Below are positions 1,499 through 2,902 of a stretch of 64,000 bases of DNA, in pieces. The DNA is from Hyaloraphidium curvatum SAG 235-1 (lineage: Eukaryota > Fungi > Monoblepharomycota). Location of the stretch: positions 186,001 through 250,000 of the forward strand of contig JAIVFI010000038.1 of assembly GCA_025558095.1 (NCBI GenBank). Direction: 5' to 3'. The notes beneath the pieces are model-generated. The model searched no databases, had not been told where the DNA came from, and saw only the letters and a program-made list of their open reading frames with translations. Position numbers and translations under genes: made by a program. Position 1 is the stretch's first letter; every line of letters starts with the position of its first letter.

Positions 1499-2902
1499 AT
1501 GCCGACCTCTGTTGCTGTCATCGGCGCCGGGAGCGTTGGAGCCACAGCAGCCTGGTGAGCAGCGCGACCTGCTTCCGTCGAGTCAGGGCCTCACCGAATC
1601 CCCGGCCGCAGTGCGTGTTACAGCTCGGGCGGCCATGTCTTGGCCGCCTCCGATTCATGCATGTACGATTGGCTGATTCCGTGCCCTCCGACGCGTCTGC
1701 AGATGCCTGCGTGCTCGGGGGAGTTGGTGCCGAGGTCATCATGGTCGATGTCATGCCCGAGGTCGCCAAGGGCCAAGTTCTGGATCTCTCCGACGCCTCG
1801 TTCGTGAAGGGGGTCGACGTCAAGTTCGGCACCCTGCAGGATGCCGGTCAGGCATCGATCATTGTGGTGCGTAGCTTGACCCCTCGATTCAACCCCTTGA
1901 CCCCTGGTTACTGCTCCGCAGGTCACCGCAGGGGCTCGGCAAAAGGAAGGCGAAACTCGCATCGACGTAAAGTGGCCCGTAGCCCGTGCCATCCGTGGTG
2001 CTCACCCCCTGTCGTGGCAGCTGATCGGCCGCAACAAGGCCATCCTCAAGAGCGTCTTCGAGGGAATGCAGCCCATCAATCCGAACGCAATCGTTATCCT
2101 TGTGGCCAACCCCGTCGACATCTTGACCTCGATCGCCCAGAACCTGTCCGGCCTGCCCCGGAACCAGGTCTTCGGATCGGGCACCTTCCTCGACACGGAA
2201 CGCCTCCGCGTGGCGCTCTCGGACGCCCTCGATGTAAGGCAAGCACTTCCGCGTCGATTCCTTCACTAATTGGCCGTGGCTTTGCCAAGGTTTCGGAATC
2301 GTCGGTTCACGCCTTTGTTCTCGGGGAGCACGGTGACTCCCAGATCGTCGCCTGGAGCTCGGGCACGATCGGCGGCACGCCGCTCCTTGAAATCCCCGAG
2401 GTTCAGAAGATGGACAGGGATGCGGTGGCCAAGGCCGTGGCGAACAAGGCGTACGACATCATCAAGGCCAAGGGGGTGAGTCACGGCGGCGGAAGTCTCT
2501 GGACGAGTGCTGAGCCGTTCTTGCTGCGTATCGACCACAGGCTACCTACTTTGGCATCGCAAGTTCCTCTGCTCCGCCGGTGGTCGGCGCGATCTGACCC
2601 GACAGCTCACATGCAGGGCGCTTGTGTTGCGCAACTGTGCCAAGCAATCATCCAGAACCACAAGAGCGTGAAGCCTCTCAGCGTCTACGTCGAGAAGTAC
2701 GGCACTTGTATCTCGGTTCCCTGCGGTGCGTTGCTGGTGCCCCGATCTGTCGCGGCTCTTTGTTGATCTAACACGCTCGACTACAGTGTTGGGCGCCAAG
2801 GGCATCGAGCGCATTCTCGAAGTGCCTCTGAGCAAGGAGGAAGAGGCTGGCCTCCTCAAGTCTGTCGCCACGCTCAAGGAAGTCCTGAGCAAGTTCTCGT
2901 AG
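1499..2902 (+). CDS. LDH: L-lactate dehydrogenase
   Basis: [15 protein letters not shown] Rossmann motif; [13 protein letters not shown] (Gln in the substrate loop, i.e. LDH rather than MDH); [34 protein letters not shown]. Multiple short introns including a stwintron and a GC-AG intron; stop TAG at 2900-2902. Confidence 0.93.
1554..1702 (+). other. Putative [D1,2] stwintron: internal intron 1555-1611 nested between G and T of the external 5' donor
   Basis: G1554 + [GTGAGC...CTCAC...CCGCAG 1555-1611] + TGCGT reconstitutes donor GTGCGT. External branch GCTGAT (~1672), acceptor CTGCAG at 1702. Two-step removal gives T+AT = Tyr and restores the LDH frame. Confidence 0.75.

Follow-up and report, generated by a model that had tools for sequence, protein, structure and literature searches.

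The 149-nt interval between the first two exons of the L-lactate dehydrogenase (LDH) gene of Hyaloraphidium curvatum is best explained, with a probability of roughly three in four, as a [D1,2] spliceosomal twin intron (stwintron). The interval occupies positions 1554-1702 of the window, by which is meant the whole 64-kb stretch of DNA that was analyzed. The mature mRNA joins T1553 to A1703. Under the proposed arrangement, an ordinary 57-nt U2-type intron (1555-1611) would split the donor site of a second intron after the first nucleotide, such that the outer intron could be recognized only after the inner one had been removed. The separate excision of 1555-1611, the intermediate that it would yield and the order of the two reactions are what we infer from the splicing signals in the sequence.

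The host gene (1499-2902, plus strand) is present as the single LDH copy in a 31.9-Mb assembly of 55 contigs. The corresponding GenBank protein, annotated as "lactate dehydrogenase A [Hyaloraphidium curvatum]" and referred to here as P0001, showed 100% identity over the exon used for the search (residues 351-413 of a read-through ORF). It contains the domains PF00056 and PF02866 (Ldh_1_N and Ldh_1_C), has full-length homology to fungal L-LDH and shares 52-59% identity with the LDHs of Gonapodya, Chytriomyces, Umbelopsis, Rhizopus and others. The domain content and the fungal LDH alignment thus bear out the name that the initial annotation gave to the gene from sequence alone. Its label for the host, a zoosporic fungus, holds roughly as a statement of lineage, H. 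curvatum being a member of the Monoblepharomycota, class Hyaloraphidiomycetes. Exon 1 (1499-1553) opens with the ATG at 1499, directly upstream of which lies an in-frame TAA, and continues for 18 codons to GCC (1550-1552), followed by T1553 as the first base of a Tyr codon. This codon (TAT) is finished by the first two bases of exon 2 (1703-1866), AT at 1703-1704.

Evidence for the mature junction came from assembled contigs, which drop rare forms, of a public run from 2018 that carries the same organism label (X1). One contig of 1,923 nt, assembled at a depth of 4300.6, lies on 1353-1553, 1703-1865, 2021-2233 and 2290-2476 of the window. It joins T1553 directly to A1703, skipping 149 nt with the ends GG..AG, with an alignment ambiguity of 0 and a shorter side of 163 nt. 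The junction GCAGCCT|ATGCC, which had been predicted to appear as a GG-AG intron, is therefore present in the dominant transcript. The same contig omits three further intervals of the LDH gene, each bounded by GT..AG; a fourth, 2726-2786, is missing from another X1 contig of 289 nt and depth 917.4. Given that GT..AG intervals are skipped in them, these contigs represent copies of spliced mRNA. The later LDH introns confirmed by contig joints in this way are 1867-1921, 1967-2020, 2234-2289 and 2726-2786 (all plus strand). Introns 2 and 3 of the gene were also seen independently, and with identical sequence, in a freshwater polyA metatranscriptome (X5). The spliced LDH piece in that run covers 1831-2139 and is identical to the window, which implies that H. 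curvatum or a near-identical strain is active in fresh water.

No contig from any run fell inside 1554-1702, and the depth recorded in the flanking bins is accounted for by the contribution of the exon bases alone. The joint expected for the intermediate, 1554 to 1612, is likewise absent from the contig joints, in contigs that drop rare forms. Since rare forms are lost at this stage, an interval devoid of contigs constitutes missing data rather than counter-evidence.

The protein sequence encoded across the T1553|A1703 joint agrees with its being the productive one. The joint restores the conserved GATAAYA motif (...GATAA-Y-ACVL...) and gives a protein equal in length, in this region, to nine aligned fungal LDHs. 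By alignment, Tyr occupies the junction codon in 8/9 other fungal LDHs; Gigaspora has Phe and Basidiobolus Ser. No joint other than that of T1553 with AT yields this Tyr.

Inspection of the interval revealed two complete sets of splicing signals, and all of the donor, branch and acceptor positions given in the initial annotation between 1553 and 1704 proved to be as claimed. The proposed internal intron (1555-1611, 57 nt) has the donor GTGAGC at 1555-1560, the branch site CTCAC at 1590-1594, with the branch base A1593 lying 18 nt before the 3' end, and the acceptor CAG at 1609-1611. G1554, the proposed first base of the external donor, would be parted from its T by this internal intron and is excluded from the mature mRNA. 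The rest of the proposed external intron (1612-1702, 92 nt with G1554) begins with TGCGT at 1612-1616 and contains the branch site CTGAT at 1673-1677 (branch base A1676, 26 nt before the 3' end) and the acceptor CAG at 1700-1702. The interval accordingly has every element of a [D1,2] layout: a GGT start, a full internal U2-type intron, TNNGT after the internal acceptor, and an external intron with its own branch site and acceptor, the removal of which restores the frame. AG followed by T occurs at only two places in the interval, 1581-1583 and 1610-1612, and use of the first would require an intron of 28 nt, which is too short. With 1610-1612 as the sole workable internal acceptor, the nested solution is unique.

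These signals can be explained by the following two-step scheme. The internal intron would probably be removed first, as it is transcribed first and as short fungal introns pair their splice sites across the intron. Its removal would bring G1554 onto TGCGT and so create a new donor, GTGCGT, which together with CTGAT and the CAG ending at 1702 would define the 92-nt external intron. Removal of the external intron would then allow T1553 to meet A1703, giving back the Tyr codon of GATAAYA. The predicted hybrid donor is the same as that of the confirmed introns beginning at 1867 and 2726, in agreement with the earlier remark that GTGCGT is reused as a donor. More generally, the RNA-confirmed LDH introns are 54-61 nt long, have the donors GTGCGT (twice), GTAAAG and GTAAGG and use CTCAC as a branch site; the internal intron is indistinguishable from them in size and signals. 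In a filtered heuristic set of introns from across the window, to be taken as a rough guide, the median length is 58 nt, and GTGCGT, GTGAGC and CTCAC are found again in other introns.

The extent to which such a layout might arise by chance was estimated from 20,000 dinucleotide-preserving shuffles of the interior of the interval. A [D1,2]-compatible interior was found in 0.5% (strict definition) to 1.2% (loose definition) of the shuffles, and the exact donor GTGCGT was regenerated in 0.04%. On these figures, the nested reading is ~100-fold ahead of an assembly error or one-step GG-AG splicing, in neither of which the interior would have a role. When both strands of the 64-kb window were scanned for a [D1,2] layout bridging open GC3-rich frames, this site alone was returned. 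Other classes of element were also considered. The internal site reads CAG|TGCGT and not AG|GT, and it is therefore not a ratchet (recursive splice) site. The donors GTGAGC and GTGCGT and the branch sites CTCAC and CTGAT do not correspond to the RTATCCTT or TCCTTAAC consensus of U12-type introns. The predicted fold of the interval was not significant (z of -1.5), nor was any internal symmetry, and an Rfam search of the interval gave no match.

Several other explanations of the apparent GG-AG junction have to be weighed against the stwintron. It might be an artefact of the assembly, with one G too many at 1554/1555; the true sequence of 1553-1556 would then be CCTGTGAGC, and a plain 148-nt intron of the form GTGAGC...CAG would be removed in one step. 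The mature mRNA fits this explanation equally well, and the DNA-like contigs of runs X2 and X3 cover 1857-2083 and 2269-2485 only. The size of the assembly relative to its 55 contigs suggests that it was built from long reads, in which single-base indels can survive. P0001 implies the same GG, but it derives from the same assembly and so is not an independent witness for G1554. Exact-pattern scans of JGI metagenome contigs for the boundary of exon 1 with the intron, with 0 or 1 extra base, and for the start of exon 2 found nothing, and look-ups of P0001 and of the 509-amino acid read-through ORF brought up no other contig. Against an artefact stands the absence of any letter or indel difference between the window and the RNA and DNA contigs of four runs across the covered parts of the LDH gene. 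A GG dinucleotide is, moreover, not a typical site of homopolymer error. If the extra base were spurious, the full nested intron would have to be a chance mimic at the 0.5-1.2% level (0.04% for the exact donor), and we consider an assembly error improbable. It is about as improbable that the interval is a true non-canonical intron, cut directly between T1553 and G1554, possibly with U1 paired to the neighboring GTGAGC as a guide. The ends of the mature junction are indeed GG..AG, and the stwintron intermediate is absent from contigs in which rare forms are dropped. The U at intron position +2 is, by contrast, nearly invariant for the major spliceosome, an efficient GG donor (contig depth of 4300.6) would be unprecedented, and coincidence would have to account for a full internal intron and for the precise placement of TGCGT. 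Apparent GG-AG introns do make up ~0.02% of a long-read annotation of Ganoderma lingzhi (PMC11590231, table 1), a point in favor of the direct cut.

The deposited model offers a third solution, namely two ordinary introns, 1555-1611 and 1617-1702, on either side of a 5-nt microexon, TGCGT. This microexon is in frame, both introns have GT-AG ends and the annotation is that of the public record. The dominant RNA contig nevertheless joins 1553 to 1703, and the joints that the microexon demands are found in no contig. The two residues that it adds occur in none of the nine aligned fungal LDHs, and the second donor that it needs, GTTACA, is poor. The initial annotation had set a mature cDNA that keeps TGCGT against its own reading; the dominant X1 transcript does not contain it. 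The microexon is thus refuted as the main product, and the chance that this model is the right account of the interval is very slight.

A different question is whether the proposed two-step removal is put to regulatory use. On paper, two dead-end routes compete with productive inside-out splicing. Splicing from the donor at 1555 to the acceptor at 1702 (joint 1554|1703) gives GCC TG|A, an in-frame TGA that can be read directly from the sequence as the initial annotation had stated. Furthermore, G1611 and TGCGT form a native GTGCGT (1611-1616), and early removal of 1611-1702 from this donor would ruin the internal acceptor and leave a stop-containing insert of 56 nt. A regulated contest between these routes could gate LDH output through nonsense-mediated decay (NMD), and in a single-copy gene such a gate would control all LDH. 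By contrast, no contig contains an unproductive isoform, the productive one is very abundant, and papers on ascomycete stwintrons deal with them as complex introns that are spliced constitutively. We therefore hold a regulated contest to be improbable, and a shade more improbable still the specific form in which the productive share shifts with oxygen or growth state and so sets the output of the sole LDH gene via NMD. Efficient one-step GG-AG splicing is nonetheless ranked as less likely than this kinetic gate. The on/off switch for lactate fermentation that had been put forward is unsupported, as no isoform but the productive one was seen across the junction, its contig depth being very high. 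Given that the productive mRNA is abundant and that there is no sign of switching, splicing of the stwintron appears to be constitutive.

The GenBank model of the LDH gene is wrong in two places. At the proposed stwintron, P0001 reads ...GATAACAYACVL..., a two-residue insertion that is unique with respect to the nine fungal LDHs; the TGCGT microexon was invented because the gene predictor kept to canonical GT-AG ends. Further downstream, the model is without six residues, ATYFGI, that are present in all of the aligned LDHs but one, the Geranomyces model, which is also gapped. Translation and alignment place these residues in a putative 18-nt microexon at 2541-2558, flanked by a predicted intron at 2476-2540 (donor GTGAGT) and a predicted GC-AG intron at 2559-2616 (donor GCAAGT), all on the plus strand. 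Similar errors of annotation are likely elsewhere in the genomes of early-diverging fungi. Unspliced X1 contigs of low depth lie over this region (2469-2579, depth 22.9; 2550-2646, depth 69.5), overlapping both predicted introns, and imply that there is some retention between 2476 and 2616.

The X1 contigs also bear on the transcription of the surrounding DNA. The LDH contig runs leftwards without a break to 1353 and then jumps to ~1175, into a class II aldolase gene on the minus strand. The jump supports a 5' intron in the aldolase gene (~1178-1354, with the minus-strand donor GTGCGT) that splits the ATG as AT|G, and it suggests that the divergent LDH and aldolase transcripts overlap head to head. 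A further X1 joint, at 2498-2550 with a depth of 13, has the ends CT..AC, that is GT..AG on the minus strand, and hints at a spliced antisense transcript within the LDH gene.

Comparison of the LDH gene with orthologues from Gonapodya, Chytriomyces, Gigaspora, Spizellomyces and Phlyctochytrium revealed none with an intron at the Hyaloraphidium position, which is thus lineage-specific. In Gonapodya prolifera, the nearest of the sequenced relatives with 59% identity, the first intron lies in a Gly codon ~10 codons upstream (L002:1534-1678). Spizellomyces punctatus (L005:553-618) and Phlyctochytrium arcticum (L006:553-703) have in common an ordinary intron that follows Thr17 in phase 0 and lies 7 nt upstream of the Hyaloraphidium position. 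Three distinct intron positions are therefore found within ~30 nt of the sequence for the N terminus of the Rossmann fold across chytrid lineages. A search of the H. curvatum genome with the 149 nt returned the self-match only, and no second [D1,2] case was found in this genome. One candidate, an intron of SRRM1 (L010:1651-1952, minus strand), proved to be a plain GT-AG phase-0 intron of ~300 nt between ...FSQK and VKMSKVQLKV..., in which the frame is kept without any nesting. Genome-wide counts of the pattern are uninformative, as they would be dominated by ordinary introns that precede exons starting with TRNGY.

The closest counterparts of the proposed LDH stwintron are the [D1,2] stwintrons of Pezizomycotina, described in Aspergillus, Fusarium, Helminthosporium and the Hypoxylaceae/Xylariaceae (PMC5639578, PMC5587772, PMC9024468, PMC12403724). 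The [D1,2] architecture has been verified in ascomycetes by experiment, through both the mature mRNA and the intermediate. The layout is the same, 5'-G|GT...YAG|TNNGT...YAG, in which the internal intron splits the external donor after its first nucleotide. As in Pezizomycotina, both introns are short, of U2 type and equipped with a branch site each, a GG-AG intron seems to have been removed from the mature mRNA, and the frame is lost if splicing occurs in one step. Unlike those examples, the LDH case resides in a member of the Monoblepharomycota and is known from the mature junction together with sequence signals. It also differs from the propagating stwintron families of the Hypoxylaceae in having no sequence-similar sister copies. 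The alternative [A2,3] route, open to some ascomycete stwintrons, is closed in the LDH gene because the base that follows the external acceptor is A and not G. In Lipomyces, a [D4,5] stwintron occurs together with other complex introns; its intermediate has been sequenced, and the 2020 paper claims it as the first outside Pezizomycotina (PMC7138796). In Lipomyces, as would be the case in H. curvatum, a donor is interrupted by a nested intron, outside Pezizomycotina and at an intron position specific to the lineage. The point at which the donor is split differs, however, and Lipomyces still belongs to the Ascomycota.

The literature searchable outside subscription journals describes no stwintron beyond the Ascomycota, in agreement with the earlier statement that these introns are described in ascomycetes, with no reports known from chytrid-like fungi. 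The LDH interval is thus a probable stwintron in a new fungal phylum. If confirmed, it would be the first outside Ascomycota in that literature, in a host lineage that split from Dikarya very early. Confirmation would also indicate that nested introns, and the splicing by intron definition on which they depend, belong to short-intron fungi in general and are not peculiar to filamentous ascomycetes.

Recursive splicing at the ratchet points of Drosophila and vertebrates provides a more distant parallel. Such points have the sequence AG|GT, and the donor is regenerated downstream of an exon end that remains unchanged. The proposed LDH pathway would share with ratchet splicing the stepwise removal of the intron and a first splice that leaves a re-formed 5' splice site where the ends are joined. 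By contrast, the LDH site is AG|TG, the regenerated donor would borrow G1554, which is later removed, and the intron is 149 nt long rather than tens of kilobases.

Finally, the LDH interval shares with the GG-AG introns of splice-site surveys the same apparent terminal dinucleotides when mRNA is aligned to the genome (for example, PMC11590231). No mechanism is given for the surveyed introns, whereas the LDH interval contains a nested solution with canonical splice sites throughout. This comparison suggests that, if the LDH stwintron is confirmed, some of the surveyed "GG-AG" introns may likewise be removed in two steps.
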